Positions 5,201-50,416 of a DNA stretch of 64,000 nucleotides are shown in pieces. The translations under genes and the position numbers were made by a program. Origin of the DNA: Paragordius varius (taxonomy: Eukaryota; Animalia; Nematomorpha); the NCBI GenBank assembly GCA_964247055.1, contig OZ176050.1:6076001-6140000 (forward strand), given 5' to 3'. The number at the start of each line of letters is the position of its first letter. The first letter of the stretch is position 1. A model generated the notes under the pieces. The model did no database searches. It was not told the DNA's origin and saw only the letters and a program-made list of their open reading frames with translations.

Positions 5201-7192
5201 TTTTGTTTAAAACATCAAACAGACTGACAAGGTCTCAAACTTTCTGCAAAAAAGTATTAAACCTAACATATCCCTATGGAATATAATAAAAAATACTTAG
5301 GACACGTCTCAAGAAATAAACCTTTAAATGTATCTATACTTTAAAAGAGTTTAGTGACGCCTATAAATATTCAAAAGTAACAATAGGGGTTGCGTCTGAC
5401 CGGTCATGTATGCCTTCTTGACCGGGAATGCGACTGCTTATAAAAATAACCAGATAAAAACTTTTATGTTCTTATTAATAAAATCAATATATAAAATAGT
5501 GGTATAAAAACCTAAATTTAATTTTAATTGGGACATTTTAAAATTTTATCAATATTATTTGTCGCTTATATAAATTTGACACTATAAGATTGAACTTAAA
5601 CGGTTATTTTAATATTGTTTAGTTAAATTGGAACAAATATTTTACACTTGTGGTAAAAATTGATTAAAAAATGGGTATTTATGAACTATAGATGATTCTT
5701 TTTTAACTGATTAAACACCCCTACTTTCAATGTTTGTAATTTCAAAGGGCCGTAACTTTCTTAAAATTTTTAATAATAGAAAACGACAATGGATAATTTA
5801 TAAAAGCGTCCTCAAAAAACCATAATTAGTATTGGTTAATGCAAATTTGGAGGGTAAAAATGTTAATTATATTAATTATACCATACTTGATAATATATAT
5901 TTTCTCGAAAGAATGCAGTAAACATACTAAAATTTTTTAAATAAATTATACACATGGATAATAAAATTGCACAGATTCAATTAAATTCAAAAAATTCTAT
6001 TTTACAAAATAAAGCATTTTTTAATTGAGTCATCCGATCAAAACCAGTTTTCTGGAAGATCTACCAATTAAATATCGTAGACATATAATAATGACTAAGT
6101 TTGATTAATTTTAAAGAAGTATTTTACAAGGGATGTTGTTTTAAATCAAGTTACTTACTTTAGTATTTTGAATTCGTTCTAAACATTTTTGGGGAGGAAC
6201 ATCCAAATAAATAGCGAGGTGAGGATAATTAACCTCCAATCCTGGTTTAGAAAGCACGCTTCTTAACCGAAAAAAATGATTTCGCGCTATATAAAATAAT
6301 TGGAAAAGTTATTTAAGAAATAATACATAAATTGGTAACCCCGAACAAAATTATAAAAATAAAACTGAAAATAAATTTAAAACGTTTACGGAATCAAAAA
6401 CCTTAATTAGTAATAATAAAATACTCATGTTTCAATTATCAATTTGTATAAAGCAAAAAATATAAATGCTTTTTAGAAATATTAAACGTTTTTCATAAAA
6501 TTTAAATGTTAGAAATGTGTTACCTCCTTCCGACAAATAACCACGTTTAAACATTGCTTGTAACTCAATCATATCGCAAAAAACTGAATTATCTATAACA
6601 CAACCCTGCCCTAAATAATAAGAAAATAAATCTAACCAGTATGAAATAAGTGATTTAAAGCGTCAATATATTGTTGCGTTTTTACGTGCATTAGTTTAAG
6701 TCGCATTTTAGCGTTCGAAGCTTGATCAGTAGGTTCGCGATAAAAATGTGACTCATCTAAATTCATAATATCACGGTAATCTGGTGCAGTTTCTCCGGGT
6801 AAGAAAGGTCCATCAATTGGTAAGAATGCATTAAGCCATCGAATATCAAAACCATAATCATTTATATAATACATATCAAGGTTTGCGGCAGAGAAATATT
6901 TCATACCTAATTCTTTGGCAAGATTTTCGGCAAATGTGGAACGACCAGATGCGCAATTTCCTTCCACAATAAAAATTTTACTGTTTTCATCCCATCGTTC
7001 TAATGGACGATCAACCATACCCCATAACCGATTAAACTTTTTAGTCTTGTATGGAAACGGTCTTGACCTGTTTAATAATTTATCTTGCTCTGCTTGTGAT
7101 AAATCTGGAGATATCCCCCTTTCCCTCAGCGTATATAAAAAACGACGCTGAATATTGCTCCTAAGAAAACCACTAAACACATTGAACCGCAT
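2230..7192 (-). CDS. NDUFA10: NADH dehydrogenase (ubiquinone) 1 alpha subcomplex subunit 10 (42 kDa subunit, dNK fold), about 455 aa, 7 exons: 7192-6637, 6610-6524, 6286-6159, 4114-3968, 3462-3353, 2906-2795, 2457-2230
   Basis: Motifs SKIFIVEGNCASGRS (P-loop), QQYIDALNHLFHTG|QGCVI, PHLAIYLDVP, EVIAYDWSEFGD and ERMKDWYF match NDUFA10/ND-42. All junctions are GT-AG and phase-consistent. Confidence 0.95.
4154..4408 (+). mobile_element. Possible decayed hAT transposase C-terminal dimerisation fragment in NDUFA10 intron 3
   Basis: FYWLKE..YFPKL..RLNIFSSPP..STDRQNF loosely follows the hAT dimerisation pattern WW..yP.L..lA..l.iP.s..sER.FS. A hAT-like end motif (TAGGGGTTGCGTCTGACCGGTCA) lies near 5385 in the same intron. 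Confidence 0.3.
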
Positions 7193-7275
7193 ATGGTATA
7201 ATGCGCGTTTACATATACGTTATGAGACCAGTATGGTATTTTGGAAAATTGTTTGGCCTTAACTAATTCCAACAA
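7193..7275. promoter_or_regulatory. Bidirectional promoter / shared 5' region of NDUFA10 and DENND4
   Basis: The divergent ATGs at 7192 (-) and 7276 (+) are separated by only 83 bp. Confidence 0.7.
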
Positions 7276-10200
7276 ATGAATAATACGTTATATGAAGAGC
7301 GATGTAGTCTAGCAGATTACTTTATGGTCGTTGGATTAGATGACAAAGCCCCAACTTTACTTGAAGATTGCATTTCAGAAGAATTGGATTCGGCAACACA
7401 CCTTAAAAACTCTTTAGATCCTATAGTTGATATAGCCGTTATATTTAGAAGTCTTGGGGAAGAAGTTTTTATTTAAATTTATATTAAGCCTCCGCATGAT
7501 TATCAAATTATTGAATCAACTCCATTTGGATACCCTGCAGATCTAAATCATGGAAGTTTACGCAGCCCTTCTGTATTTTTATGTTTTAGACGTGGCCGTG
7601 ATAAACCTCCTATTGTAGACATTGGGTGCATATTATTTTCATAACGTTTGTCTTAACTTTAAGTATTATTTTGACTATAAAATTATTGTATAAGAAATAG
7701 CCAAATTTTATTTTCAATTTAGTATCATATTAATAAAATATTAATGGATTCCTAATATTTTTTTATTATTGTGTGATCTTCGACAAAAAATGAATATATA
7801 AAAAAATATCATTTGTTCTTTAGTCATTAAAAATGCGATTCTATCATAATTTCTTAACTATAAATTTATAGCATTACAACCTAATTTTAATTTAATCCAT
7901 GCATGCCAAATAACTTAATTAAGCATTTTACTTGCGGATTGCCAATATTTTAATAGCAAATATTAAATATCATAACCCATATAGAGTCATGTATGAGGGC
8001 AAAGAACGCATAATGTCTGGATGTGAAATTATATCTCAATCACCGTATGGCAGACCGGCTAATGTTAATAATAGCGGGGCTCGTACATTCATTACTTATC
8101 GAAGGGCCTTACCAACCGCATCTCCCAATGAACTCGTTGTTTCCCACATTTGCATCGTTTTTACCAATAAGGTAGTCTTTTTATTCTGTAAATTTATGAA
8201 TTTTAAATTTTGTATTATAGATTTGAGTTATAGATTTTGTAATGGATATATTGATTAATTAAGTAATCAAGAAATTTTATTCGTAAGAAAATTTAGCCAA
8301 TATTTAATAAAAATTATGACATATCTATTAAATATCTATGCATGTATGTGTCACCTTTTTATGGCAGGTGTAAATTATTTTCAATATTTTATATCTACCA
8401 AAAAGAAAAGCAGTTTGACATAATATTTTTTAAATTTAAAAAAAGTATTATTCCTACTATCATTATCAACCCATATAATAATTTTAAAATTCCATACCAA
8501 TCATTAAATGCCATAAATTTCGTATTCATTAATATTAATTGTAGATTTGGCATTTTAAAAGATTTTTTTAAAAATAATAGGGAGAAAAACCACCACAAGC
8601 ATTTATGCTGATAAATAAAAACTTGAATAAGGGAATGGTGGGATCTGACGTTTATATATGTTACAAAAAATCTGTATTGAAAGATAATGTCGTCCCTTTC
8701 AAACCTGGTAAACTTAATTTTATTTTTTGATTACCTTTTAAGGTATTTATTAATTTGCAAGCGAATGATGCAAATAAATAAATTCTCGCATTTTAGTTTT
8801 GTTAAATCGCTATCCACAAATTGATAATATGGAATATCCTTTACCGGAAAACGCTCCCCTATTTTTATTGCCTATGGGAGCCACGCTTGAAAAATGGCCT
8901 AAATCTGCAAACATACCTGATCCACTATTTTCAACTTTTGTACTTACAAACCTTACCGGACAAAAGGTAATCCCTTTTTTCGTAATTTTACAGAAATCTA
9001 GTGTTATAATATATTTATTTTAATGTTTAAAAAGGGAAAAATAGATAAAGAGCTAGCTTTTGAGATAAAAATATCTGTATGGCTTTATTCTATTATTAAA
9101 TACGCAATTTATAGCACCGATTTGAAATAAAAGTAAACTTATTCGGTATTAATAACATATTTTTTTGATTTCTCTCTTATAAATGCAAATAACTATATGA
9201 TACTGATTTAGATTTTTAAACATGTTTTTCAACGATATAAAATTTTTAATAAGAATGAAATATTTGACATTATCAATTTTTCATTAGGCTTATGGCGCCG
9301 CAATTTCATTTTACGAATCATATACCGTTGAAAATATTGCTGTGGAGTATTTACATATGTTAGGCATAAACTTTGATAAAAACTATGTTAATATGACGGA
9401 ATCTAATAATAGTCCATCGCAAAATAGCGAACCTCAATTAAAATCAAATCATGCTCAAGCAAATGGCAACCTAGCCGCCTTAAAAAGTAATAAACTTGGT
9501 TTATCTTCTTTTGTGATATGTAAAATTTTATTTTAATGACTCCTCAACATAGAAATAAATAATTGGTTCAAAAATTGGTTATATTTAAACAATTATGTAC
9601 GTTTAATTACGTTAGATAATTCCAATCATGTGGATAAAAATTATCACAATGGAGACTATATAGTTTACACTAACAAAGCCATAGGATTTATAGCAAGATG
9701 GCCACTTTTTTCAGTTTTTAAACGATTTTTACAATTCCTTTACCACATAACGTTGGTCGGAAGTTCGAAAATTCCAATCGAAAGGTAAATGGTTTTAAAG
9801 CTATCAAAATTTATTTATGATTTTTGGATTTTTTTATCAACTTTCATAATCAGATTAGTTAATAATAATTAATTAAATTTATTTATTACACACAGATTTA
9901 TTATTATTAATAATTTTAAATGAAGTAACAAGTTCGATTCCAATCAAAAGGTTTTCAATTAAGGTATCAACAGAATTTTCAGATTTTATAATAATTGGTT
10001 TTTTTAATATATTTTAGAATAATTCCATTCAAAAATATTATAACGATATAATGTATAATAAATTTTAATTGAAAATTTTAGATACATTTATTTTTTCATG
10101 CACAAAATACCGTTTCCATCGCCTTCAAGGCCACAAATTCTTGTACAGGTATGAGCCTTTATATTAGCCTATATATTTTTATTGATTATATATGAGATCA

Positions 10201-13200
10201 ATGTACATATATCATAGCTATTTTATTGGTCATATAAATTAATTTTTATTTATTATATAAGTGAATGTTAGTTTTAATTTAATCTAGTCTACAATGAACG
10301 ATTTTGAATTACCACTTTTAATAACAATGTGTATCATTTTATTGTTTAAGATAAGGATAAATGGCATTTTGTATATTCTTTCAAAATTTTCTTTTTAAAA
10401 TTTGAAATTGGGGTTACATTTGTAAAATATTATACTCAACACTAATGAATGATATCACGTTAATTTAGCTACCATTTAATACGACATTATCGTTAATTCA
10501 AACATTTAATTTGCCGATGGGTATTACCGGAGCATCTTTTGTAGCCCTAATCCAAAACTTGAGTGTTGAAAATATCCTTAATTTGGTTTGCGGTTTGTTG
10601 TGTGAAAGTAAAATCCTCATGCACAGTTTGAGGCCCAGTGTTTTGACCGGTATTGGAGAAGCCTTGCGTCTAGTATTATATTAATTAAAATATATGGCTT
10701 TTTTAATTTTAAAAGTGACTTTTTGTTTTATATTCAAAGACGATAAATATTGTTTTGATATATCTATTTTATTGAATAATGTGTACGACAAAAATTGTTT
10801 TTTTTTGGGGAGGGGGGGGATATCTATCATTTTTATAAATATTGAATGCACTTACTTATTTTAATATTGATATTTGTACAATTCTTATTTTATAAAATAT
10901 TTATAGCTGATATTTCCACTTCAATGGCAATGCTCGTATATTCCTCTCTGTCCAATACTTTTATCCCAAGTACTAAATGCCCCGGTGCCTTATATTATAG
11001 GTTTTATTTTACATTTTATCTAACGTTCTAATGTAATAAATTATAATTAATTACATTATAAATACATAATATACCATTTACAATTAAAATTCACCCTTGA
11101 ACAGTTCAAATTTACCCTAGATATAAATTGCGGGCCAATATAACTCATCATTAATATGAAATATATCTTTGTGGCATTGTTTATTATTCAAATTATAAAC
11201 AATATTTTATTCTTTAAAAATATAAAAAAAATATAGATAATTTTTAATTTTAAAAAACAGTTAATTTATTTTAGGGTGAATTTTAATTGTGATGGCGAAT
11301 TTAAATTGTTCAAGGGTGAATTCGAAGCGTAAATGGTATATATGGAAAATAGAAAAATTCAAGCGATTTTATCGATATTTTTAATTTAACCTATTTGATT
11401 GCATTATTAGGAATTGATTCAAGGTATTTTGAGATGTTTCAACATCCCCCATATGATGCCATAACCGTAGATTTGGACACAAATACACTTAATATGTAAA
11501 TAATTTTTATTTTACTAATATAAAGTTTTTTATATTTCAAATCTCATTCATATCTTTTGATTTTAGACCTGAACACAAACGGGCTATTATTAATTACAAG
11601 AATTTACCCAAGGTATATTTTTTGAGAGAAACCTTTTTTAATTATATGAATCTAAAAGGGCAGGGTAATAAATGTAACGGAAGCATTGTTCAATTCTATA
11701 AGTTGCCGTTTTAATTAAAATTTGCATTAGTTAATTTATTAAATTAGTTTGCTTTTATTAAAAAAAAACTATGTAATATGTAGTTTTACATTCTAATTCT
11801 GTCCTTTTTAAGAAAATGGTGAAAGTCATTAAGCATTCACAACTCAAGATAAATGAATTTATTGAGTCACATCCTGAAATTTTGTCTTCACGGTACAATA
11901 AAGCACAATTATTGGATGATGATTTTAAACATGTTAAGATGCAGGTAACTTATTTATATTTACTTTAAATTTAAAGTTCATAACATAAAAAGTTAAATTC
12001 TATATTATTCGATATCTCACTTTTGTTAATGATATAAATACAATTGTTAAATATTAGATTGAGTTAGTTTCGTATTCTAAAACGATAAGGTAAATAAAAA
12101 AATACATGTTTAAAAATATGGTTTGCTATATATTATAATATAAGTCTTCTATTTTTTGCAATTTAAAACTTTTTATGTGTTCATTATAGTATATGTTGGA
12201 AAAAACTATACAAGACACATTTATTCGTTTTATGGCGTGTTGGTTAATCAACTATCAGCATTTTCTAATACCCATTACTAAATCCACATATCATGGTGGA
12301 CAGGATTATGATGTAAAACAACTGTTTGACTTCCAAGGTTCTATTATATCAATTAAGAAGCTTTTTTATACCCTAATACTTTATAATGTAATAAATTATT
12401 TTATTTTAATCTCCCATTTACAGGTTTTTTATATTCTCGAGAACGATCCGCATTGCCTATATACGCTTGTATGTTAGAAACACAATTGTTTTCACAATTT
12501 ATCCAGGATAGGTCCTTTGTCACAATTAAGGATTCCTATTTAACATTGTTTGATGAATTTAGTTCCCGAGTAAGTTTTATTTCAAACGAGTTGTATTATT
12601 AATATATTATTAACAAATTTTTTTGCGTACTTAAGGTTGACCCTAATGACGATAGGGATGATCAAGCCTTTTTGAAGGATTTGACAGAGGAAAATGTTAA
12701 AAGGTATCTTATTTTATATACAAGTTTTTTGGACTAATGATAGCTTTTTGTTCGCAATATAACGTATTTTTCAAAGAATTATATTATTATTTATATTTAA
12801 TAATATATTGTGTTTTATAGCAACTATACCGTATACATCCCACCCCCGGATAATAATGGTCTTCCACCCGGTGAAATATACAAGTGAATACAGAAAATTA
12901 TATATATTGAAAAATATTTTTAAGATATGGATGTCCCATGAAAGTCATATCACGATTAAAAACTTAATATTGATATTCTTGTAAAAACCATATTTTTTAT
13001 AATGATTTAAAAATGTATATAATATGATTTACATTATTATTTTAACATGTTTTAAGTGTTTTTTATGTCGATATAAGATATCCTCATGGATTTTCCGATC
13101 TAAACTTGACTCTTTTTGAAATGTTATCTGATGGTGAAGATCAAAATGATATAGATACCATTTCACCATCTCCAAATTGTTTTAATACCTCCCCAAATAA

Positions 13201-16200
13201 TACTAAAAATTGCACCGATATTTCGAATTTCAGTACAAATGAAAAGAAGATTTTTTTAACCCATTCAAGAAATTCTTCTACAACTAGTATTTTTGTTATT
13301 TGCAGTTTTTGTTTTTAAAATATTATATACAATGAATTGTAATTTAAGTTTAAATGATTAGGATTTTGTAATTATTAATTTTTGGTTTTAGAAAATATCG
13401 ATATTTCCTCTCAATCCCCGGGTAAATTGGGTGCTAGCCCTATTATGACAAGGACAAAACAAGAAATCAAACATGGAAAAAGAGTTTGTTTTTGACATTA
13501 TTATATAACTGTTCCAAAAAGATATAAAATATTTTTGTTTAAGGTCTGTGTAAAAAAAAATTTGCAATTATTTTTAATTTCTATAGATTGCTCTAATAAA
13601 CTTTGAGGACCCTGTTTTTAAAGCCAGGTTTTTGTTGAATTCTTGTTTTTCCATTTGGTTCATTTACCTACCTGCTTACATAAAAATGTGTCAAAACAAA
13701 CAACGAGCCATGTATTGTGCTTTTGATATCCTCACAAACATTCCCACCAAAACTGCCGTTAAACAACCAAATGAAGTAAAAATGCTTTTGTATTCACAAT
13801 AAGGAATTTTGTAATAGACATATTGTAAAAATTAGAATTACAAATGAAAATATAAAAACTAAAAGACAAATATTTTTTTAATTTCCCATATTTTTTTAAC
13901 CTAAATTATTTTTATATAGACTGTAATACTAAAATTGTGAAATAATATACCATTTACAATTCAAATTCACCCTTGAACAATTCAAATTCAGTTTAAAAAT
14001 AAATTATATATTTTCGGGATAATATAATTCATCATTAATATGAAATATATCTTTATGACATAGTTTATCAGTTTTTCAGCATTATATTAATTTTAAAGAA
14101 AATTTTATATTTTGAAAATATTTAAAATAAAGGTAATTTTTAATCTTTAAAAACACATAATTTATTTTAGGATGAATTTGAATTGTTAAAGGAGTTAACT
14201 GTAAATGAAATGTAGATTGTCCTAACATCTGTCCTTATTCTGAACTCTAACATGATAGGTTATAAATCATAGTATGTCTTTATAAATTTACATTTGTTAT
14301 TACCATTTGTCTTAATAATTTAAATGTTTAATGTAAACTTGTAGACTCTAATTTTGAATTTTAATATAGATATGTTATCGGATCTTGTTGCAATTATGTT
14401 GCGTTTATAAACAACAATACTTGGCGGTTAGAGTACTACGAGAAATGCGCCGCGTGGGAATTCAACCAAATGCCGTAACATATGGATATTACAACAAGGT
14501 AATTAACAACTTTTACTCTAATAACTTTTTAGATAAAAATATCTATTAAAATATGTCTTGAACTTACTAAATTACATGGCTCCATATATCGGATCTAGGC
14601 CCTATTTGAAATTGATTATGTTTAAATAAATTTTCAATTAATGTTCTTTTAATATTTTTATCTAAATAAATATAAAGTTTATCAAAAAAATTTTTTATTT
14701 TTTTGGGCCATTATGAGGGCAAATACTCAAAATCGCTAGTAAATTTGTAAAGGTATGATGGTCCACTTTAAACGATTATATATTAAAAAGTACAACCTTA
14801 TTCAAAAATCAAGTGCTTGATCAACATGAGCTAATTAGTTTACAAGCGCTGTTTTTTTTTAAAAAAAAGGATTATTAGAACGGGTATTGGAGGGAGAATC
14901 TCACCCCATCATGACCCTTTTTGAGAAAAATTTAATAGGTATTAATTTTCAATATAATTTTCAATATTTTTTATTTTGTTTAATTTATAGGCTGTGTCTG
15001 AAAGTATGATGCCTTTTAAGCATCACCTTAACCCTTATTCAAACCAAAAAAATTTGTCGGAGCCAACAAACGAAACCGAACAACACAAAAAAAGTGCAAT
15101 ATCGCGTGACCTATTAACACACATTCATTGGAGTTTGGTTCGAAATGTCGTATTTGCCTTGGGTCATTTTCGACGCTCTTGTCCAGCTTATGTGGAACGG
15201 CGCAATTTTTATTATCAAAATCTCATCAATTATTACACAAATTATAACCAAAATCATTCTTTTAATAATCAAAAGTATTATTCAGCCAATGCGATGAATT
15301 TAGTACCGGGAATCATTACGAATCCTGCATACAAAAATATTGTTCCACAATCAATAAATCATCTCAATACACGTAAAAATAATTATTTACAAGCATTTTT
15401 TTATTGGCAATAACGTTTTTTACATAAAATATAGAATCAAATAATCAATCGAATACATTTCTAAAATGCGGCCAAGTTCCTACCCCATATACCCATAGAA
15501 AACGATTATTTAGCCACAGTAGAAAGAATATACCATCAGAGACCTGTGATGTTAATGATGCCTATTTTTCAGATCCCGAAAGTTTTTATTTATTTATTTT
15601 AACGACTTGTATTGTTAAGCTTATTTTTAATAATTATTACTTTTGTAATGCCAATTTCTATACTCTTTAGTTCTTATACCGAAACCAAAAATCAAAATGT
15701 ATCATTCGGATCCTTTGTTGATCAAATCAACAACAGCTTCTAAACAGGGTATTAACCATTAATCTGAAAAAAAAATTCATTTTATATTTATTTATATTTA
15801 TGTATATAAATTTTATTTAACAGGTAATATAATTGTTGAATATACACCATCGACGGTTCCTACCCACCCACCAAAAATATATTCTCCCCCATCGAATTCC
15901 CTATTTACATCACCTTTTGCAAAACTTGTTAGCCGAAAGTATATTAATTTTTTATTTTATCTATAAGATTATTAAAAATAAGTAATTGACATCAAATAAT
16001 TTTATCCTTAATATTATTATTTTATTAACAGATTGGACAAATTTATAAGTAAAATAGATAAGGCATTACTAACTTCATCATCATCGTCTACGGAATCAAG
16101 GACAAATACATCAATAAATAATATTGGGCAGCATAATTATGGCCAAAATCATAACTATCAGCCTAATAATTATACTAATGACTTTCGAATTCAACCACCA

Positions 16201-16276
16201 CCCCATAATCGATCCTATTCTTTGAAATCAGGTTTTTTGGATTTCGTGTTTAAAACTCAAAAAAAGTTTATGCTTA

Positions 16277-16324
<48 letters not shown>

Positions 16325-19300
16325 CATATATAATCTTTTACAATCATAGATGAAAACAATTTGGATTATTACAAACAACGTGCACAATATTCTCGTACAT
16401 CATCCACATTTCCCGGTAATATTATACATTAATTAAACATAATTTGTATTTATTTAATATGTCAATGCCTTAAAATTCAGAGGCACATAGACATAAAAGA
16501 AAAATATCTCACACTACTATACCGATACCATTGATTTCGGAAGTTTCTTTGGGCAGTCATATTTCCAGTTCTTCTCAAGCCCTGTCTCACACAGATTCTG
16601 TCGATTACGCCAATAACCGGACCCCAAAGTTTTATTTTATTTCTCTCTGTCACAAAACGTTTTAAATTTTTTTGATAAACTCATTGTGAGGAAAAAATAT
16701 ATTTATTTTATCATACCATGACCATTTTTTGAGTATAATGAAATAAATTTTTTGAATAATAATAAACAATATTATTCTTTGGATATATGTATTTAACTTT
16801 TTTTAATGTTTTTTGATCCATTATGAGGGTTGCATTAGTAAGCTATGCCCATTAACGTATGGGGAAATAAAATAATTTATGGGAGATGTTTATTTTGAAA
16901 AGCTCATTATGACTAGGGGCGTCTACTTCATAATTTTTCTTTGTTTAATAACCATGTGAAAATGTCTAACCCTTTAATATCCGTTGTAGTAAACAGGACA
17001 GATATGGTCTTGAAAATATAGGAGCTACCCCAAACAGTTTAGGAAATGCGGCGCGCCTTATGAAAAATGCTGCTGGAGCTTTGAGTTTCAAAATTAAAGG
17101 TTTCATAAATGATGCCTCTACTGCCCTAATGTCATTGGATATCGATGATTCTGGTAGATAATATATAATTTTACCGCAAAAGTCTCTCTAGTTATTTGAT
17201 AATTATTTGTCTCATAAAATTTTATGAAAACTAAATTTTATTAAAAAAAATTGCATGGTATACGATTTACATCTCGAACATTTTAATCGATCTTAAACAT
17301 TTTAATTTACCCTTGAATATTATAATTTTACCCTATAATATTTTAGTTTTTGAAAATCAATTACCTATATTTTTTGATATTTTAAAATTAAACTTTTTTT
17401 AAATTAAATTAGCCCGAAGACACATAATTTTATTGTTAATGTGAATTTGAAATGTTCAAGGGTAATTCAAAATATTTAATACTAAAAAAATGAAGGGTAT
17501 GTAGGAAATGTTATGTAAATTTATGATGTTCAATTCATTTGAGGTGTAATGGCATAGCATCTTTTTCAATGGATAAAAATTAAAATGAAAGAAATAATAA
17601 TTAAGCAGCATTATTATTTTTATAATATAATCCGTTTAAAAGATACAGACTTATCGAAATTATCGGTTATTGTTTAGTTTCAAATTTTACTATAATTTAT
17701 ATTATTATTACTTAAAAATATTCGTTATTGACAATAATAACTTTTTTATATTTTTTTGTTTTATCCAAAAATAAAAGAGACTTTATATAACCTCTATAAT
17801 ATAGATTACGAAGAAACTGATGAAAATTCAGAAAAAGTCAATCAAACTCAATTAAGCTCCGGTAATCAAATAGGACCATCACAACATTCTACAAAGGGTT
17901 CGCGTTGGGAACCTGGCCTGCTTATAGGCGATCGTTTAATGTGGGCTGATTATAATACCTATTATCAGGATTCACACCAATTATCCAACACTAGTATAAA
18001 TAACAGCAGTAAAATTTTAAAATATATAAATAATATGTAAAGAGAGGATAAATATTTTATTAAAAAAGAATATTATATTTATAAAATTTTGATTTTTCCC
18101 ACATTAACTATTTAATTATATTGTAATATTGATTCCATTAACAAGTTACCTTTTTTTCGCCTTTTTCCAAAACAAAATGATCAATATTATAAAATCATTT
18201 TAAGAATATTAATGTATTTAAAAACATATTTGTCTTTTAATTTTAACCATTTTCTGTATAATTTTTATTTTTACTGTAATGCTGCATTAGATATTGGACC
18301 TAATCAAAATAATGGTATTTCAACGGCACAACAAATTGAAAACAATAACATGCCCAATAATCCACCAAATTTGTTAGGGGGTGATACAATGTCTTACAAC
18401 TTAAACACTCGGAAATTAAGCGATGATATGCGACGGTTAGTTTTGAAAATATAGGGGTTAAAAATGTTTGATTTATATTTTTGACTCTTTTTTAACATTT
18501 TTTACTATTAATTAAACTCTACAAGATATGTGTCTTATTAAGCTGGCCACAATTTGTTTTTGAAATGTAATTTGCATATATTTTTTATTTTCATATTTAC
18601 TTTTTTATGAAATTAATTTTAATAAGTATTTTAGTCTTTCTATTTCAAATGGGTGAGTTATATCTTTAATTTCAACGTCTTATCTTTAAAACGCGAAAAA
18701 TGTATTTGAAGGCTTCATATCTTATTGCTGATCAGGATATATATTTTTCAGTGATGCAAACTCCCATATTTATAAATGTCAGTTTTAATCATAATTTTTA
18801 ACTGATACAACTTTGTAATTTCAGATTATTCAAACAAAATATTTATGAAAAAATTATATAAAAAATATTTGTATCATGTTGGTAAAATTATTTAATTTAT
18901 AGGCATACACCTCAATATCTTCAGCCGAGCGATCAACAAGGCCAATATCTTAACATAGATAATCAAAGTATATAATCACTTGATAAAATATTATTGATTC
19001 ATCTCCAATATTTATTTTTCAAACTTTTTATTTTATTATTAATTGAAAATGTTAAATGATTTGCCAGTAAGATAAAATGAAAAAAAATCTCTCTGAATTT
19101 ACCATACTTAATCGAAATCATATAAAAGAGTATTGTAGTTAAATAACTTTACGCTTTGATATTTTCATATGACAAGTATGATTTTATGTAATGTATTTAA
19201 TTTAATCATGTTTTATAAGTTTAATGTAGAAAAAAAAGCCTACATATGTTTAATGTTTAATTGGAATAAATATATATTTCACAAGTCAAAAAATATTTTC

Positions 19301-22300
19301 AAAGATGGATTATTGTACGCTATAACATTATTTTAAGGTCAAAAAAGATTATCAGTTTCATCAATTCCTGCCCACAACAATTTTTCTCTTGCCTCAAATA
19401 CCAATCAGCCTCTTAACACGAATCTCACATCTCTACCAAAATGGTTTGAAGAAACCAAACTCTTTAAATTAACCAAGGACAATACATATCTACGATCAAT
19501 CATTAAAGAATTAATTGTGCCATTAAATGGAAATGAAAAAGTATAAAATCTAAAACTATACATATATTTATTTATATGTAAATACGATATCATTAATAAT
19601 TTTATAGTATTTATTATGGTTAAGAGGAAATCTTTTTACATATACTCATTGTTTCTAATTCAATTCGATTGAAATAGTATCCTATATTAATATACTTTTT
19701 ATATTTTTAGTTTGACCCAATGAGAAAATCTAAATCCTGTTCAGAGCTTTGCAAAAAAACCAATACGTCAATCCCAGAGCAACGAATGTATATCTTATTA
19801 ACTTTAACAATTCATATCAATTTTTACATATAAATATTACTACTTTTAAAGGCGTGATGTTGTTGACTCCAAAATAAAGAATAAAATTAATGGTAAAGAC
19901 TCCCATATCAGCAGTAATGATATTCAAAGAATTACTTTCTCTACGGAAATGGTTTGTCCGCATTGCCAAAATTACATATATGATGAGGATATCATATCCG
20001 GATGGTATCCTGATGATTCCAATTTGAATACAAAGTTATTAATTGTTTTTTTAAATTCACAGGCTCTATATTAAGTTCAATCATTTTAAAAAAGAATATT
20101 TTTGCTTTAAGAATCATTGAACTGTGATATATCACCATTTTTTATGATATGTTATTTTTTACTCTTATGCACTTCATATTTTAACATTTTGTTCCAATGG
20201 ATTTATCATTTGAATATTAAAGTTTTTATTATACTGCCAAAGCTATATTAATAACTTACTCCTACAAATTTAATAGAAATATATTGATATTCTTATTGTT
20301 AAATTAATATTTACTGCTAATTTTTAACTACTTCCATATAAAAACAATGTTTTGGCGTTTTAAAATTTATTTTTGTGACAAAATAAGAATCATTGAAATA
20401 TTAAATTAATTTAAATCCAATTTTTATATTTAGATGTCGATTCTGTAAACGAAATTTTGTACCGAATCTGTCCATAAACATCCGCGTAATATCATTAATT
20501 TTTATCTTTTTATTAATGCTTTGTCAATCAGTAATCATTATTTTTTTACATTTCATATAACTTATCCTCACATTTAAATTTATGTTTTGTTAGAGGGTAA
20601 ACTACAAGAAACTTGCTTCTAAAATAGCTGATTTGCGAAATTTACTCCATAAATCTGATCAATCTATACCAAAACGTTTATCAAATACCAGCAAAGGTCA
20701 ATTATATTATTTAGACAACACATTATTTGTTATTTAAATTTTTGGAGAATTAAATTGTTGTATTGGTTATACTTAAAATTTATTATAATAAATGCTTAAT
20801 TGATTACATACATAGTAGATAGCTTAGATGTCTCGTTATACAAATCATATTCCAGTGAATCCATTATTCCCCATAAACCTTTATCATTGACAAGCCAACT
20901 CGACTTAACAGAATCCGAATATCACGAATCCTCTATGCTGGAATCGCTTCTTACTTCTTTTGCCGAAGTGCCACGGAACATCTATAATTTCCTCAATTTT
21001 TTGGAGTACTTACATGGAACAATACTAGGGTATAATGTATTATTTTGGAAAGAAACGAATTAAAATAAACACTTAACAGTTAGTTCAATAAAAGTTTAAT
21101 CCAAATGAATAAAAATAAATTTTTTGCATATTAACCGTCTCACTTTTATAATACCAAAGCTGATTTGCCATATTATCGTATAAATGTATCACATTAATTT
21201 TCTACATTTAGGCTATTTTTTAAAAATAATCAAAATATTATAACCATTTGTTCAATTTCATTTTTTCGTTTTGTTTTTATCTGTTATTTCCGGGTTAAGA
21301 GAGTTTCCGGTGGTTTTTAAATTTAGATAGGGTATAAATTTTAAAAACTGCTTTTTTGAACCAAAATTTGAACACATTATATTTTATGCGTGTATAGTGA
21401 CCAAGTCGATATCGAAAAGCAGTCCACGAATTTCGTTTATCAATACTTGAGCCCACTTGTTTTGCAAAAAGAACTTGAAAACATTTTGGATCATGAAGCC
21501 AGTGATGAATGTTTACTTAATGTGAGTTTTGTTGAACGCCATGCTTGCGTTTATTGGAATATGCTTTGGTATTTCCATCGACTTGGCTTACCAAATTTCC
21601 TACCTAATTTGCTTTATGGAAACGTTATTGATACACCTTCGGACCATATGGTATTATATAAAAATATTTATTATTATTTAGGTGTTTTTGTTCAAATTTT
21701 TGATGAGAGTTACAATGGGAAAAATACCAATAATTAATTTTTATTTTTTGTTAACTTTAAGGATAATTTTTAATACTACCCCCACATTAATTAATCATTG
21801 ATTGCCATTGTTTTTATCATTATTTGATAAACCCTTTCTTAATTATATTTTGGAATTAAGTGAATGCCGTCTGAGATTTGTTTGATAGAATAGCTAAGAG
21901 AGAAACGCTTTATTACTATTTAATTAGGTGAATGCTATTTAAATTTAAATTTTTATTGTCACAATTACTTTCATGAGATAACAGAAATTTGCTCTTAATA
22001 CTATATGAATTTACATTTTTATCCTTAAATAATGTACATTAATATTTTATAGCCTCCGAATTTAGAAATTTTAATTTTATGGGAAGATCTGATGCCATAT
22101 TTACGGGAAACAGTGGATGTTTGTGACATTCCTCTTTACATTTGTCAGTACATGCATCAAAGTTAGCATTTAACTCTATTTTAGATGATTTATACGGATT
22201 AATTGAAATGGCTTTCCCGGAAAAACAACTAAAACATAACCACCAAATTGATAGGGAGTAAGTTTATTTATAATATAATAATATCTCATTGCTTTTTAAC

Positions 22301-23123
22301 CAAAATTTTTTGCCATAATAATACCGGATTCTCTTTTACCTTTAGGTCTTTATCTCATTGTTTAGAAGCGATTTCAAAAAATGATTTGTTTAATGCATTA
22401 CTTCCCATTCTACAATATATTCAAAATGATAAAAGCTTGGCGGGCAAAAAAACTAAAACCACTCTTTCTCAAAAAATGATTAGAAAGCATGGGCTTTATC
22501 ATGAAATTATGTGGTTAGCCATATTGTTACATGAAAATCTTAATTATGGTATGACTATCGGGAATTTATTTTAATTTTTTTATTTCTTCTATTCATATAG
22601 TATAGGTAAAACACCTTTAAAATCTTAAATTTTTAATTATGGATTTTTAATTGCAATAGTTTCCCTATAAGGTGAACAATGTTAAAGCAAAATTATAACG
22701 ATTATGTCTTTTGTTCAGGTTTTGATTATAGTAACTGCAATTATAAACCAAATTTATATTTTATTTAAATATCTATTAAATACAACGTTTAATTATATTT
22801 TGCAATTTGCTATGTGTTAAGCCGCAAATATAAAAACCATTGATAAATATTATTTTACAATAATTTATAAAAAAATCTAAGTTATATAAATAGATTGGTT
22901 CATTTACACAAAAGTATAGTGTCATAAATTTTATCGGCAAAATTTCTGTTGACCCGTTTAGAAATATTTTATTATATTTTTAGCTGCCTATGACTACGAA
23001 TACAAACGCGCATTTCATCAACTCAAAGGAATTTTTGCCGACATTTTTTCTGATAGCGACCACCCACCCAACAATAATATACACATATATCAATCAATAT
23101 TTTGTGGGACATTCAATTTGTAG
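7276..23123 (+). CDS. DENND4: DENN domain-containing protein 4 (C-myc promoter-binding protein / Drosophila Crag family Rab GEF): MABP, uDENN-DENN-dDENN, PPR-like repeats and conserved C-terminal domain; about 43 exons
   Basis: Spliced motifs [104 protein letters not shown] and [12 protein letters not shown] match DENND4A/C in order. A continuous phase-consistent GT-AG chain runs to TAG at 23121-23123. Confidence 0.95.
11070..11340. mobile_element. Tc1/mariner-like MITE (about 270 bp) in DENND4 intron 10
   Basis: Imperfect TIRs of about 45 bp: TATACCATTTACAATTAAAATTCACCCTTGAACA ... TGTTCAAGGGTGAATTCGAAGCGTAAATGGTATA, with TA-flanked ends. Further copies lie at about 13946 and 17259. Confidence 0.75.
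13946..14211. mobile_element. Second copy of the same MITE family, DENND4 intron 20
   Basis: Left end TATACCATTTACAATTCAAATTCACCCTTGAACAA. It shares the internal sequence CATCATTAATATGAAATATATCTTT with the 11070 copy; the right end is degenerate. Confidence 0.7.
16289..16322. repeat. (TA)n microsatellite in a DENND4 intron
   Basis: Direct reading. Similar tracts occur at about 35880-35907 and 45866-45892. Confidence 0.9.
17259..17470. mobile_element. Degenerate third copy of the 11070 MITE family, DENND4 intron 29
   Basis: Matches TATACGATTTAC..., TTTACCCTTGAA, and TGTGAATTTGAAATGTTCAAGGGT at the right end. Confidence 0.5.
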
Positions 23124-27484: not shown

Positions 27485-28425
27485 AATATTAATAGATTGT
27501 TAATAACTCGTTTAAAATATATTAATTGATTAAAATAATAAATTTCGGATCTTGATCCTCTATCAATCAAAATATAAATAAACCAATAATAAAGTTTAAA
27601 ATAATAAACTGTGCTATTTTTAGTTCCGTATTCGCTGTTGATTGTTTACGACCAGTGTTGTGCAGTGGTTTCCTTTTTAGAATTTTGTGGTATGGGGTTT
27701 GATTTAAGGTCCTTCTTTTGTAGCTAAGGTCTTTTGTGTTGTATGAGTGGGTGTATAGTACCTCTTCTATAGATCTTTAAAAAAAGTGTTTGTTTGGCAA
27801 TTATTTTGACGAAAACCGAACACATAAATAAAAATATTCTTTAACATACAATAAAACGTCACAAGAAGTCACAATTGACAATTAAACACATATTATTAAC
27901 AAACAAACCATGTACCAACCTATATCTTTTAAACAAAAAAATACATGAAAATGCCATATATGGAATCCCGTGTAATGGATGCAACAAGAAATATATACGA
28001 CAAACCAAAAGGCCGATATAAATACGAGTTAAAGTACCTCAAAAGCAAAAAAACTCATCATTATACGAACATATTCAGCATGCTTAACATTCAATGTGTT
28101 CCTACAAAATATTCGCCAAGCAAAAAAATTTCTTAAGATCTATAGAAGAGGCGCTATACATTTAGTCACATAACACAAGACCTTCAACAGAAGAGAAAAT
28201 TTATTCCAAATACCCCATTACAATAATTTTTAAAGCAAATACCTCGACAACACTGGTGTACAAATAGAGCAATTACGAAAGAAAAAATAGCAAACTGTTC
28301 ATTTTTTAAATATTATTACAATTTTATTATTTTTAGTATTTTATATAATTGGTAAAAAATCCGAAATATTATATTATTTGAATAAATATTTTATAGAAGT
28401 AATTAACAATTTTTCTTTAATATTA
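27485..28425. mobile_element. Foldback/MULE-like element with degenerate inverted repeats of about 300 bp
   Basis: 27650-27790 (ACCAGTGTTGT...GTATAG..CCTCTTCTATAGATCTT) is the reverse complement of 28130-28260. Similarity extends outward to about 27485 and 28425. No TSD was identified. Confidence 0.65.
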
Positions 28426-28426
28426 A

Positions 28427-28997
28427 CACTTGGATACAACACATTCATTTTAGTCCTTCGATTTGAATTGGGGTAGTTAAATACCTCAGGCCTGTTTAAA
28501 ATAAATTCCTTAAAAAATATGGAAGGAATCGAAACCATGGCAATTTGCACTTATATAACATTAATAAACAGATATATATAAAAAAATTTATTTAAAAATA
28601 CTTGATATTATTTACTTTAAGCTAAAACCGAAAGGTAAAAATTTATTCAACGTGCCATGTGTTCAATGGTAAAATTGAATAATACAAAATAAACCGCTTA
28701 TTTTATTTCTATCAATGTTAGATGTATTTTAAATAAAAAATTAGCTCTAAAATTATCCTTAAAATTAAATGAAAGGCGATAATTTGCTATAATTTTGTAA
28801 AATAAAAATAGCGTCGAAGTAGGACATGGAACTTTTTTCTTTCAAAACAAAATTTTATTTAGATAATTTGGCATATTTATATATTTTTGTTATAATAGAA
28901 GCATAAATTAAAATTACCGTTTACTTCAGTAATTTGTTAAAAATTCTAACTCAAATTTAGTCTGGGCTATTTAGATACCCCAATTTGAATCGAAGTG
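28427..28997. mobile_element. piggyBac-like MITE, copy A (571 bp)
   Basis: Ends are TTAA|CACT...AGTG|TTAT. A subterminal inverted repeat (CTTCGATT(T/C)(G/A)AATTGGGG) abuts one end and is offset about 25 bp from the other. It is the reverse-orientation homolog of 31749-32279. Confidence 0.75.
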
Positions 28998-29284
28998 TTA
29001 TTGAATTCCTGCGTTTTACTTTGATGGTGTTCCCATTCTCTACTAAGTATGTGTATTGTAAATTTTTTATTTATTCAAAAAATTAATGCCTATTTCGGCA
29101 AACAGGCGCCACTGTATTTTTCCTTCACAATTTCAATTTTACATGTATTTGATAATAATGAATACCATAGATACTTAGAGACATGTGAAATAAATACCAA
29201 TTTAGCCAGTTAAAATAATGGCCTATAACACTGCGCGCATCGGCGGGTATACAAAATATCCTGATGAAATATATATATTCTGAT

Positions 29285-29939
29285 TAGGGTTGTGCTGACC
29301 AAATCATGACCCGGTCAATTTACCGGGTCGACCGGGTTAGTGACTATTTATTTTTGGACCACGATCATTAAAAACAACTGTTTTTTGAATAATTGTTGGT
29401 AAAGTTTTTTGGAAGAGAAATAGTAGGATTTTATTGTTTTTTAATATATTTTTTAAAAATTTAAATTAAATATTAATATGATTATTTAACAATATAAAAT
29501 TGATAAACATGCATCGTTATAAGATTAGAGTTTAAGCATATCCAGTTATTTCGAAAAACAAAACAATCAAGCACTTTGCAAAATATGCAATTATTCCATA
29601 GAACCAATAAAATGAAAAAACATTTTATAATTGGAAATTACAATGATGAAAGAAAGTGTAAAACAAACTTAAAAATTTTATTTGCAATATCCAGTAATAA
29701 AAGCTGTGTTTTTGAAGGTTTAGAAAGCCAGGCAAAATTTATTTGAAAACAAAATTCTTGATTAAATTTGATTGTAAGAAAAACATGACATTAGTGAAAC
29801 TCAAGTTATGAACATTATATTCACTATCCAATATCGCATGATATTTACTTAAATAAAAAGTGGCATCACGTGGTCATGACCATGGTCTGACTGGGTTTGA
29901 CCGGACTTTTTTGAAAAAGCAGTCAAATGCACTACCCTA
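29285..29939. mobile_element. hAT-family MITE (655 bp) with perfect 8-bp TSD
   Basis: TIRs TAGGGTTGTGC and GCACTACCCTA. ATTCTGAT occurs on both sides (29277-29284 and 29940-29947). Subterminal GACCCGG/CCGGTC repeats are present. Confidence 0.9.
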
Positions 29940-31748
29940 ATTCTGATAGATTGTATCAGGATTCTCATGGTGCTTTGGGTTTTGGTGCTTTTGTGAAAGA
30001 AAGTTATTTTATATTTGTATCCTGTTTTTGCCATATTTTGCAGACTGTTTTTATTTTCACCATTCAAATACAATAAAATCGGGACTTCATAATTTTGCTA
30101 AAATTATATTTTTTGAGAAATTATGCATTTTAGCAAAAATTTTTTCTGATGTCATATATTAATAATAATTCTTATCGCAACCTCGGGATTTTCGCGTTTA
30201 TTTTTAGTTAGCCTGATTTGGGTGGGGCTAAAAACCTACGACTTTCGGAGCCCACATATAAAAAAATTTTTTATAAAAATATTGTTTTTCAAATATAGTA
30301 TATGATATATATTAATTATTTTGGGAAAGCATTTAGCTTACACTAAAAATAGTTATTTAGCCAAATGTAAGCGTGTATATTTGATATATTTACAACAAAA
30401 GTATAAATATATTTCTTATATCGCTCGTGCGGCTTAAAACCTAATTATGATCATATTATGATGTATATATATCATGATATTATCCTAGTCACTCGATTTT
30501 CCCCCAGTTTAATATAGTTTTGATTGCATGATTTTTTAACGATTTAAAAAATATCCAAAAAATGACAGCGAATAAGAGATACAGATTTTTTACTATATAT
30601 CTTTTAAAAATAAAAAAAACGCACAGTTTAGAGTCTTTTTTTCCTTTTTACACTTATATCCTTTATCACGTGCTTAGAATACCAAAAAATGCATATTTAA
30701 TTTGGCCCAATATAATTCTATTTTAGTATATCAAATTACCTCTCTTTACCAAAATTTTTTTATTTAGCAGATCAGTAATACAATTTTTTATGGAGCCATT
30801 ACCACAGTGTAATTCTCTTGACTTGCTAGATCAAAACCAAAAGCATCAAGAGAATCTTGATACATTTATATATCAGAATAATTATATATAATCAAGATAT
30901 TTTTTGTGTGGGCATTTAAATATATAGCTTCTACAAAAATATTATTTGTATAGGTACTAAATTAGCTTTAATTTATACCATGACAATTACTCGTTGACTG
31001 ATTAATTCCTCTAAGATCATACGAGTCCTTAAACATTTTACTGCCACTCTATTAATATTTTACCAAGAAATATTTTGTAAGACTTTATGCATTGTTTAAA
31101 TAGGATTTTTACGGGTAAATCAAAAATAATTCACACTTCATAATTATAAAATAATTTTATATTTGCAATAATGTTATGTCCAGGCTAAAATTTTTTAATA
31201 AATGCTATTTTAATGATACTTTCTTCACATAAAATAAATATTATAATTCTTTTAATTTCGTGGGTATTTAATTGCACCGGAAGATAATATTTTAAGATAT
31301 ATAACATGCTGCCCTTTAAAAACATTTATTTGTTCATATGCATCCTGAAAAAACATTTTTTGAAAAATAATTTACGCATTTTTTATGTTTGTTAAAATAT
31401 TGTTTTTTATATCGTATCAAAAAAGCTCAATTTTGAAATAGTCTGATATAATGACAAATGTTTTCCTAGCGATTTTGGATCAGCTTCCTACATTTAACTG
31501 CATTAATGTTATGTAATAGTTTCATATCTCTTGATTTCATACAGGCTTGAGGTATTCACCATTAAATATAATCTTTGAAAAAATTTAGGTATATAAGACG
31601 CTAGTGGGCTTGTCTATAGGCCAAATCAAATGTCACACATAGCTTATCATATGGGTTTATATTCATTTTTATATTTAAATCTATAAATAATTTAATATTT
31701 ACACTGATAAATTGGTTTAACATAATATTTAAAAAATGTTCTCATTAA

Positions 31749-32279
31749 CTTCGATTCGAATTGGGGAAACTAAATATCCCAGACTAAATTTGAGTTAGGA
31801 TTTTTAAAAAACTACTAAAGGAAATGGCCTTAATTTAAATTTATGCTTCTATCCTAATAAAAATTATATGCCAAAATATCTAAATAAAATTTTGTTTAGA
31901 AAAAAAGGTTCCGTGTCAAACTACTTCGACGCCATTTTATATCACAAAATTATTGCAAAATATCTTCTTCATTTAATTTTAAGGGTAAATTAAAGCTAAT
32001 TTTTTATTTAAATTTCATCTAACATTGATAGAAATAGAAAAAGCGGTTTATTTGGTATTATTTTCAATCACACATGTCACGTTAACTAAATTTTTACTTT
32101 TCGGTTTAGCTTAAAATAAGTAATAAGTATTTTTAAATAAATTATTAATGTTATATAAGTGCAAATTGCCATAGTTTCAATTCCACCCATATTTTTCAAA
32201 TAATTTAATTTTAAACAGGCTTGATTAAACTACCCCAAATTGAATCGAAGGACTAAAATAAATATGTTGCATTTGAGTG
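31749..32279. mobile_element. piggyBac-like MITE, copy B, ending 86 bp upstream of the PCTAIRE kinase start codon
   Basis: TTAA on both sides (31745-31748 and 32280-32283). Collinear reverse-complement similarity with copy A over its whole length. Confidence 0.8.
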
Positions 32280-32365
32280 TTAAAAAACCTTATGCAATCA
32301 GTATAACACATGATATTGAAGGTTGTTTCATTCGGCCACCTGACATCGATCTACAGCCTACCGGC

Positions 32366-35300
32366 ATGATAGGAAAAATAAAGCGTAGATTTTCTACAGC
32401 ATTTAAAAAAGATTCACACAATATAGTTGAAGCAGACTCCGATGATTATAAGGATTCGGATATAAATAACAATTTTTTTGATGATTCTCAGGAACACCAT
32501 TCTTATAAACGACCATTGACGTATAATAAAACAAGCGAACAAAATGGAAATTTATCTTCATATTTTCAAAATCAACTTGATATAAAAGAATTTCAAAATA
32601 ATTGTCCGGACACACTTTCTACTGGTGCTGAATATAAAAGTATAGTTTAAAATTAATTTTAGGTGTATATCATCCAAACAATCATAGTGAAATTGGAATT
32701 CAAAAAAAGGAAAAAGGAAAGTTTAATGGATTGTTTCGTTCAAATTCAAAAACACCTATGATTCCTAACGGAACCGGTAAAGCTATTTGTCAGAACTCAA
32801 ATAGTGTAAGTTTTTACCTTGGAAATGACAGCACACCCAAAAATATCATCAAAAATTCTATATCTTTTTACAAGGATAATGTTGATCCTCTGATTGATGT
32901 AAAAAATGTTGGATGCTCATATCCTCAAATTCCTTCGATTAAAATGTCAAAAGATCAGAGTATGGACTGGGCGGAATCAAAGGGGGCTAGTGTAAAACGT
33001 GTATTAAGCGGTACATCTGATTCCAAGAGTTTAATCAAGTCTGCTCGAAGTTTCAACATTTTTAGTAGTAAAAGCTTATCTGGACAAATTAAAAGCCAAC
33101 CCATGAACAAGCAAGATAATAAATCATCTCGTCCCCTAACTCTATTTTCGCTCAATCCCACGCACGATTATAATTATAACAATACTCATCACCATTTGTA
33201 TTATGCTAATGAATTGCCTTCCCCAACTTCAGCAAAGTCTTGCAATACACCTCTATTATTGCACAATAATCATCGTAACTTTGCTTGGCAGATTGGGGGA
33301 ATAAGCAACAATATGGATAAATCTATTAATGGTTCATCACACACTGACACCGATTTTTGCACAAAATTTAGTAATGTTGCCGATCAATCCAATCAAGTAA
33401 ACACTAAACAACATCGAAAATCATCAAGTTGGAAGAAACGAAACAGTTTTATAGCTTCCATGTTTCGCTCTACCAGTTCAACATCATCATCAACAGCTAA
33501 TTACCTTAATTATGTCAATAATGAAAGTGGATATGGTTCATCCTTGAACAATAATAATTATCCTGCTTTGCATAGCCAAAACAGTAATTACTGTAATGGT
33601 ATTGGTAATTACCTTAAACCACCAGACATTATTACAGATCATGTATTCGCTAATCAAGAAGAAACGAGTCCCACAGGGCAATCTGCCATATCTATTCCAC
33701 TGCCGCATTATAATCATCACAATCTTTATAGTCGAAAACAGCAACACAGATTTGCAAGGAGTAGGAAAAATGCAAGTGCTAAAGCCTTAAGTCAGGTAAA
33801 TAATATGATTATTAAAACAATAATCTATTAAAATAAAAATGGTGTGGGTCAAAATTTTTTTGTTAGCATACCTGCTTAATTGCATCGCTGTATAGACAAA
33901 ATAGTTTGCATGCAAAAAAAGTTTTATATCATCCTAAATTAAATATAAACGTTTGGCAGTTTTAAATGATATATATATACACTATTTCTGTTCAATTTTT
34001 TAAAAATTTCATATTGACAAAAATAAACTGATATTAGTTTTGAGTTGCAAAAGAGAGATGATTTATATTGATTGATCAAATGCGGAAATCAATAAATATT
34101 TTTTACACCAAAAAATGTACTATAACACAAATGTGCAGTGCGTATTTATGTGTATGCACTCACGTCATAGCCTTTGGGGCATTCGAATTATGAACCTTTG
34201 TTGCATGTTAAATAAAAAATGCATAATTTATTTAATTTTAATATTTTTTATTATCTCTTTTTAGCTAAATTATATTGCAAATACAAAAGCTGTTTTAAAC
34301 GAGAAATTTATATCTTTATATTAGTTAAATACATAATTTTAAAAATGTTATAGAAGCCACCAATCTTAAACTCTGAAAAAATAACATTAAAAAGTTTAGC
34401 GTTTTAAATCATTTTTTATATTGCAAGTAATGAAATATAGGTATTAAAACTGAGCTATGAAAATATATTTGTAAAGTCGGCCTGAAGTAATCAATTACCC
34501 CTAATCAATCGAATTAATTATTTTTTAAATATTAAATACCTATTAAAAGCCCAAACTGGAATATTTGTTAAGAACAAAAACACTTTTACAGAAAGGTCCA
34601 ACTATTTAACTTATGTATAAAAGCCATCTATGGTTTTTAGTTACCACAAATTTTAATCATAGTTTTTTATCAAAAGAGTTTCGGTCATGTTGAATTTTGA
34701 ATTTTGTTTTCATATTTATTTCTTTTATTTAATATTAAATTTTATTTATTTTTGAATTCATTATAATTTATTAAAAACCAATTTTAACCCATTCCCCTAT
34801 CAAAGTTTATTAATATCTTATCTATAATCTTTTGTTTGAAAGCGCTTTTTTTATCATAAAAGATTGAATTAGCGGTCGTCGTTAAATTTTTTACCGTTTT
34901 GTTAGCTCACACCAGGCTATTTTAACTTTTGTAAAATTGGTTTAACCAAAAAATTATTTATTAGCCAAAATATATATCAATAGGAGATTATATAACTATA
35001 TAACTGATATTGGTAAAAGATGTGTAAACGAACTTTTGTATGAAAACAGTACTAAATGTTTTACCGCGGAATACATGCTTTATATATAAAAAATTTAAAT
35101 TCTCTATTTTTTTGTTGTCGATGAAAGTGAATAAAATACCTGGAAGATATAGTATATGTGTATTTATTTGTTCAAAAAATTAGCAACATGATGTTAATTA
35201 TATGATACAGATTCGATGTGCACTGCATACCTACACTTATTTTTGTCTATTTTTTTGTGTTTTGTAGAGCATATGGTGTCACCATTAATGATAAAAAATT

Positions 35301-50300: not shown

Positions 50301-50416
50301 GTTCCGGTTCGAAGCCCAGTTTTAAATATTTCTTTCAATATATTTTTTTTTAATTAAGTTAAACAAAGAAGACAAAGTTTACTGTGATTTGTTCCTAATC
50401 AGAGATGGTACACTAA
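47345..50416 (+). CDS. Duplicated 3' module (exons 4-12) of the PCTAIRE kinase; open frame, all splice sites intact, no 5' exons of its own
   Basis: GTYATV through the C-terminus is repeated with no indels. I count 8 synonymous and 5 non-synonymous differences, none non-synonymous in subdomains I-X. Confidence 0.75.

Follow-up and report, generated by a model that had tools for sequence, protein, structure and literature searches.

The 64,000-nucleotide stretch of the hairworm Paragordius varius analyzed here (contig OZ176050.1, positions 6,076,001 to 6,140,000; hereafter the window) contains four GT..AG intervals of only 23 to 26 nt that interrupt the coding sequences of three genes, NDUFA10, DENND4 and a PCTAIRE-type cyclin-dependent kinase (CDK). 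According to our in silico analysis, these are probably true GT-AG spliceosomal introns, reduced to 23-26 nt, that form a separate class, enriched toward the 5' end of genes and presumably recognized as whole introns by the U2-type spliceosome. All four can be read directly in the assembled sequence. Removing three of them makes NDUFA10 and DENND4 collinear with their orthologues, both DENND4 mini-introns lie where the hairworm Gordionus also has an intron, and two of the four persist at the same length in the DNA of a second individual. The account that we give of their splicing, of their branch sites and of the cause of the 5' bias is a proposal built on sequence comparison.

The window has a base composition of 26% GC throughout and contains animal genes. 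About 52 introns were traced over the three genes; about 20 of these were pinned by homology and the rest were placed ab initio or by eye. Homology searches were made with each exon separately, and the ab initio model was a simple one, combining codon log-odds with GT/AG. Among 1.8 billion representative proteins searched, DENND4 comes closest to a RefSeq protein from the Montseny horsehair worm, Gordionus sp. m RMFG-2023 or Gordionus montsenyensis (77% identity over one exon), and the remaining DENND4 exons are 33-100% identical to Gordionus. This protein was placed exactly on its own genome locus, which gave 38 coding exons. The preprint describing the Gordionus genome reports 26.9% GC and 64% repeats, and the word "intron" is absent from its text.

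Mini-introns in NDUFA10 and DENND4

NDUFA10 lies on the minus strand. Its first coding exon (7192-6637, ATG at 7192) matches NDUFA10/ND-42 chains of complex I (E 2e-25), and the alignment to Drosophila ND-42 in a solved complex I structure (8b9z_O) stops at residue 143. In the second exon (6522-6610), which is assigned by homology to ND-42, 29 codons (6608-6522) align from residue 144 onward. Since exon 1 ends at ND-42 residue 143 and exon 2 begins at residue 144, exactly 26 nt (6636-6611, GTTAGATTTATTTTCTTATTATTTAG, GT..AG) must be removed as the first coding intron; keeping them brings an immediate in-frame TAG. The second intron (6287-6521, 235 nt), exon 3 (6161-6286) and the following intron of about 2 kb were placed by eye.

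DENND4 is encoded on the plus strand. Its first coding exon (7276-7464, 63 codons, ATG at 7276) aligns to residues 11-62 of Gordionus XP_065316469, and exon 2 (7489-7625) is 73% identical to residues 63-107, with boundaries that match at offset 0. Exon 1 ends at Gordionus residue 62 and exon 2 begins at 63, so that the two are collinear after removal of 24 nt (7465-7488, GTTTTTATTTAAATTTATATTAAG, GT..AG), the first coding intron of the gene, which brings an in-frame TAA if kept. At the same codon, Gordionus has an intron of 44 nt that is spliced in both the RefSeq annotation and that of the genome's own authors; its 36 other DENND4 introns measure 62-9,991 nt. Amphioxus DENND4 has no intron at this site and has the next intron in common.

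The start codons of NDUFA10 and DENND4 (7192 and 7276) lie head to head, 83 nt apart, leaving a very small two-way promoter region in common. In Gordionus, NDUFA10 is not found within 6 kb upstream of DENND4, and the head-to-head pairing is not kept there.

A second DENND4 mini-intron is found in the 3' part of the gene. The exon at 22053-22161 is orthologous to Gordionus exon 35, which ends in ..IPLYLHQYLYQ; both exons stop at the equivalent site, in phase 1. It is followed by 23 nt (22162-22184, GTTAGCATTTAACTCTATTTTAG) and then by an exon orthologous to Gordionus exon 36 (22185-22257), whose peptide is too diverged for a BLASTP match; an 88-nt intron comes after it, and the phase agrees with that of the next exon, pinned by Gordionus (22346). 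The 23-nt intron is also picked by the ab initio model. Its counterpart is Gordionus intron 35 (359 nt), with which it has phase 1, the GTTAGC donor and N as the split codon in common, and the orthologous amphioxus intron is 324 nt long in the same phase. With orthologues of 359 nt and 324 nt, the interval at 22162-22184 is, on this evidence, an old intron reduced to 23 nt. Counted from the start codon of DENND4, it is about 14.9 kb into the gene and ranks about 38th among some 40 introns.

The first-pass annotation, made from the letters of the window, had left this interval as an ambiguous case (22144/22162-22184). Our results show a genuine intron of 23 nt at 22162-22184 and dispose of the 41-nt version starting at 22144, which does not fit the match to the Gordionus exon end and would remove CQYMHQ, six residues conserved in Gordionus.

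First coding intron of the kinase

The kinase gene, on the plus strand, was recognized by the PCTAIRE motif, which can be read directly in the exon at 36501-36614. We take its N-terminus to resemble those of CDK16-18. The first coding exon (32366-32639) was defined by its open frame, as was exon 2 (32663-33795), a low-complexity exon of 377 open codons, which is far too long for an open frame at 26% GC (chance P about 1e-15, our own estimate). A frame switch is needed between 32638 and 32650 to reach this exon. Among 20 frame-compatible GT..AG pairs, the top donor/acceptor pair is 32640-32662 (GTATAGTTTAAAATTAATTTTAG, 23 nt): position 32662 is the sole T-rich TTTTAG acceptor of the 20 pairs, and GTATAG at 32640 is its best donor and resembles the donors of ordinary hairworm introns. 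The ab initio model picks the same 23 nt at both penalties tried (6 and 10).

No homologue that would pin this junction was found by Pfam or word searches. Pfam covers neither the N-terminus of the kinase nor that of DENND4, and word searches with kinase exon 2, NDUFA10 exon 1 and DENND4 exon 1 gave no matches, partly owing to a limit on query length. Because no homologue was found, we regard the 23-nt first coding intron at 32640-32662 as a candidate; from the frame, the splice signals and the ab initio model it is probable.

Splice signals and persistence in a second individual

The three first coding introns of 26, 24 and 23 nt in NDUFA10, DENND4 and the kinase had already been proposed in the first-pass annotation, and they lie where it placed them, have GT..AG ends and bring an in-frame stop if kept. 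With the interval at 22162-22184 included, all four mini-introns are GT..AG, and keeping any of them leads to a stop immediately or no more than three codons on. The cut points of the four junctions are set by frame or homology, and by base composition GT..AG would be expected at each with a probability of about 0.007 (a rough estimate). Removal restores collinearity with orthologues for NDUFA10 and for both DENND4 mini-introns; for the kinase, the removal is called for by the frame only. The ab initio model recovers these four introns and no other below 62 nt.

The A+T content of the mini-introns is 74-92%, and their donors are GTTAGA, GTTTTT, GTATAG and GTTAGC. A GTT start is found in 3 of 4 mini-introns versus 3 of 24 ordinary introns; GTT donors are also present in ordinary introns here, and they occur in Gordionus too. 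By eye, each of the four sequences has TTTAA or CTTAT 6-13 nt upstream of a TTTAG or TTAAG end. None of the four carries the signals of U12-type introns, that is, an A/GTATCCTT 5' splice site or a TCCTTAAC branch site.

Sequencing runs were compared over positions 5901-11900 of the window (6,000 letters, four runs, X3-X6). In a second individual with the same species label, a DNA contig spans 6512-7516 without insertion or deletion, and the lengths of the NDUFA10 and first DENND4 mini-introns are unchanged. The 24-nt DENND4 intron is of equal length in the DNA contigs of two further samples. In the second individual and in a sister run from its sample, the 26-nt intron shows 2-3 substitutions, none of them at GT/AG. 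Of the 18 exon differences listed, 13 affect a third codon position and 11 leave the amino acid unchanged; a GGG>GGC change in the codon split by the 26-nt intron is one of the 18. The unchanged lengths in a second individual, together with differences biased to third positions, argue against an assembly error and against pseudogenes. Run X3, a DNA run that carries another organism label and belongs to another study, contains 41% of the stretch's sampled words, a large part of it nearly identical; possible explanations are a host sample that contained the worm and a difference in labelling.

Size classes and position along the gene

The traced introns measure 23, 23, 24 and 26 nt, then 62, 64, 66, 71 and 86 nt, with longer ones reaching 2,128 nt; the range of 27-61 nt is empty. 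The median is about 240 nt, and the mini-introns make up 4 of about 52. The shortest ordinary intron is that of 62 nt at 15373-15434, which corrects the earlier figure of 63-66 nt. Gordionus DENND4 has the same 62-nt floor, and only its intron 1 (44 nt) falls below it.

Of the four mini-introns, three are first coding introns; if they were placed at random, P would be about 2e-4. The first-pass annotation had described a separate mini-intron class that occupies the first coding intron. The two classes (23-26 nt versus at least 62 nt) and a strong enrichment at the first position are indeed found, while the intron at 22162-22184 takes away the exclusivity. The enrichment is real at the scale of the window and is not confined to first introns. 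Since one mini-intron lies about 14.9 kb from the start of DENND4, recruitment of U1 with the help of the cap cannot be a requirement.

Other short intervals in the window were tried as mini-introns and rejected. The exon that follows 8967-9001 and 8982-9001 is actually found at 9288; the interval 15415-15434 comes after a stop, in a place where the 62-nt intron is the genuine one; in NT5C2, the interval 61778-61814 falls where the real intron is about 416 nt long. A frame-rescue scan for GT..AG pieces of 18-45 nt returned 43 hits on the two strands, mostly by chance, and was not useful as a statistic.

Alternative explanations

We considered whether the four intervals might not be introns at all, and represent assembly errors, broken pseudogenes, or sites of ribosomal read-through or frameshifting. 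Their excision has been seen in no RNA, which would suit such a reading, but the identical lengths in another individual's DNA, the GT..AG ends in four of four, the positions that coincide with annotated Gordionus introns and the stops brought in by the kept pieces all speak against it, and the third-position bias indicates genes under selection. This explanation is hardly tenable. A more limited alternative is that the kinase uses a longer intron, either with a 38-nt GTGCTG donor (given as 39 nt in the first-pass annotation) or with a pair at 59-77 nt, in which case mini first introns would be restricted to NDUFA10 and DENND4. Several GT..AG pairs are compatible with the frame, and the adjoining protein is of low complexity and has no homologue; given the unique T-rich acceptor at 32662, its ordinary-looking GTATAG donor and the choice of the ab initio model at both penalties, we consider a longer kinase intron unlikely.

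Two further alternatives concern the position of the mini-introns. They could be a strict class of cap-proximal introns that need the cap-binding complex to bring U1. A mini-intron is the first coding intron in each of the three genes whose start is visible, intron 1 is the only DENND4 intron of Gordionus below 62 nt, and the head-to-head ATGs 83 nt apart would put the first introns of NDUFA10 and DENND4 within a few hundred bases of the cap. The mini-intron at 22162-22184, about 37 introns downstream and pinned by both Gordionus and amphioxus, is at odds with a strict rule, which we therefore judge improbable. Conversely, the 5' enrichment might be a sampling accident of the window, with mini-introns at all positions genome-wide. 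There are only four of them and one is near a 3' end, but three first introns among four are poorly explained by random placement, and we find such an accident very unlikely.

Our preferred interpretation, a 5'-enriched class of shrunken spliceosomal introns, also has points that weigh against it. The sample is small (four mini-introns in three genes), and the part of the intron set pinned by homology leaves the middle of DENND4 to a crude ab initio model. The kinase junction has frame-compatible alternatives of 38, 59 and at least 65 nt and no homologue to choose between them. Because amphioxus has no intron at the site of DENND4 intron 1, that intron may not be ancient. The branch sites are guesses from four sequences. 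Finally, no run recorded as RNA is found among those that hold the stretch: X3-X5 are DNA, and X6, guessed to be RNA, gave nothing on 5901-11900.

DENND4 evolution and other features of the window

Nearly all placeable exon boundaries of DENND4 coincide with those of Gordionus at offset 0, in the same codon and phase. The gene spans 15.8 kb here (7276-23123) versus 58.8 kb in Gordionus, and orthologous introns are mostly 3-60 times shorter here; introns 5, 6 and 20 are longer here. The two hairworms also differ by the gain or loss of introns. The window has no counterpart of Gordionus introns 19 and 29 (13587-13775 and 19852-20034), the fused junction reading AG|GT, and extra introns of 117 nt (9499-9615) and 62 nt (15373-15434) lie inside the single Gordionus exons 6 and 22. 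The annotation by the Gordionus authors divides DENND4 at its 4-kb second intron into an N-terminal piece of 110 residues and a remainder of 2,068 residues, an example of the degree to which gene sets published for hairworms can be fragmented.

DENND4 intron 9 contains a fold-back element with inverted ends (11066-11350) that resembles a miniature inverted-repeat transposable element. Its summed contig depth is about 1e6, versus a few hundred beside it, which points to thousands of copies of the element in the genome.

Downstream, a tandem duplication of about 10.8 kb (36500-41200 and 47300-52000, 97-100% identity) includes kinase exons 4-10 and leaves out exons 1-3. Another repeat, with a spacing of 9.87 kb (45275 and 55144), copies a GPANK1-like gene with ankyrin and G-patch. 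At 54961-55731 lies an apparently single-exon gene of 257 codons with ankyrin repeats and a G-patch domain (Pfam E 4e-11). The repeats could be a real duplication or the assembly of two haplotypes. Rfam and tRNA scans across the window gave no matches.

Discussion

Intron size polarity with the smallest introns at the 5' end has a precedent in Schistosoma mansoni, which in the work of Berriman et al. from 2009 reportedly has small 5' introns and large 3' introns. According to a study of Gyrodactylus salaris, S. mansoni does not have a two-peaked distribution (PMC4040987). G. salaris itself does, with peaks at about 32 and 58 nt, the shorter dominating positions 1-2 and the longer taking over from position 3 on; tapeworms are cited there as well (PMC4040987). 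The first-pass annotation had proposed the hairworm mini-introns as an undescribed system, a claim that goes too far, since a two-peaked distribution with the short peak at positions 1-2 was already on record.

G. salaris is the closest published parallel to the positional pattern: both are parasitic worms with two short size peaks, a 5' bias of the shorter one and long introns alongside (PMC4040987). The sizes differ, being about 32 and 58 nt in G. salaris, whereas the hairworm has 23-26 nt and at least 62 nt with an empty zone between. G. salaris also belongs to another phylum; Nematomorpha are Ecdysozoa, and the pattern would be convergent. In addition, the G. salaris pattern is genome-wide and drawn from annotation (PMC4040987), whereas that of the hairworm comes from about 52 introns in one window.

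For size, the relevant comparison is with a survey of 51 genomes (PMC13644364, September 2026), which, as far as its main text goes, states introns below 30 nt in animals only for myxobolids and Dicyema japonicum and names no nematomorph. As described there, these animals are, like the hairworm, parasites with GT-AG introns below 30 nt at conserved positions between conserved exons, and the branch sites proposed for them, as for the hairworm here, are A-rich stretches that precede the 3' AG. Unlike the hairworm, with 4 mini-introns of about 52, they are described as having almost exclusively tiny introns (median 22-27 nt). The hairworm region differs from what that text describes by introns of up to 2 kb alongside the mini-introns, by 26% GC with transposons and duplications, and by the first-position bias. 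Ciliates also remove spliceosomal introns of 15-30 nt with a conventional spliceosome; the lengths are about 25 nt in Paramecium (PMC5014332) and 15-16 nt in Stentor (cited in PMC13644364). In these protists, however, tiny introns are essentially the only kind, and there is neither a second class nor a positional bias. In the hairworm, sizes below 30 nt occur together with a 5' bias and with long introns.

We propose that at least two of the mini-introns started out as introns of ordinary type, at positions that are conserved (Gordionus, 44 and 359 nt; amphioxus, 324 nt), and that the mini-introns represent a size class below the floor of about 62 nt kept by ordinary introns in both hairworms. 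The normal major (U2-type) spliceosome would remove them by recognizing the whole intron at once. As signals, an A-rich TTTAA or CTTAT stretch located some 6-13 nt upstream of the 3' end would likely serve as branch site, together with the T-rich TTTAG/TTAAG end. Closeness to the cap would act as a bias and not as a requirement, because one mini-intron is near the 3' end of a gene of about 40 introns.

A bolder and so far doubtful possibility is that the spliceosome assembles by two physically different routes, an ordinary one for introns of at least about 62 nt and a compact one for 20-30 nt, in which the intron would be too short for U1 and U2 at the same time and which would be favored near the transcript start; lengths in between could not be spliced. 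If this were true, the "rampant loss of universal genes" reported for Nematomorpha would in part reflect gene models that are broken at introns too short for standard aligners and gene finders.

With common default settings (a minimum intron of about 20 nt in aligners and a larger one in gene finders), genes with such introns would be missed or broken, and the mini-introns could thus lower completeness scores and inflate published estimates of gene loss for the phylum. Hairworms would be a third, independent animal lineage with introns below 30 nt and, unlike myxobolids and the dicyemid, one that keeps ordinary and kilobase introns in the same genes. This would make them a natural system for studying the minimum length of an intron and the apparently forbidden zone of about 27-61 nt.

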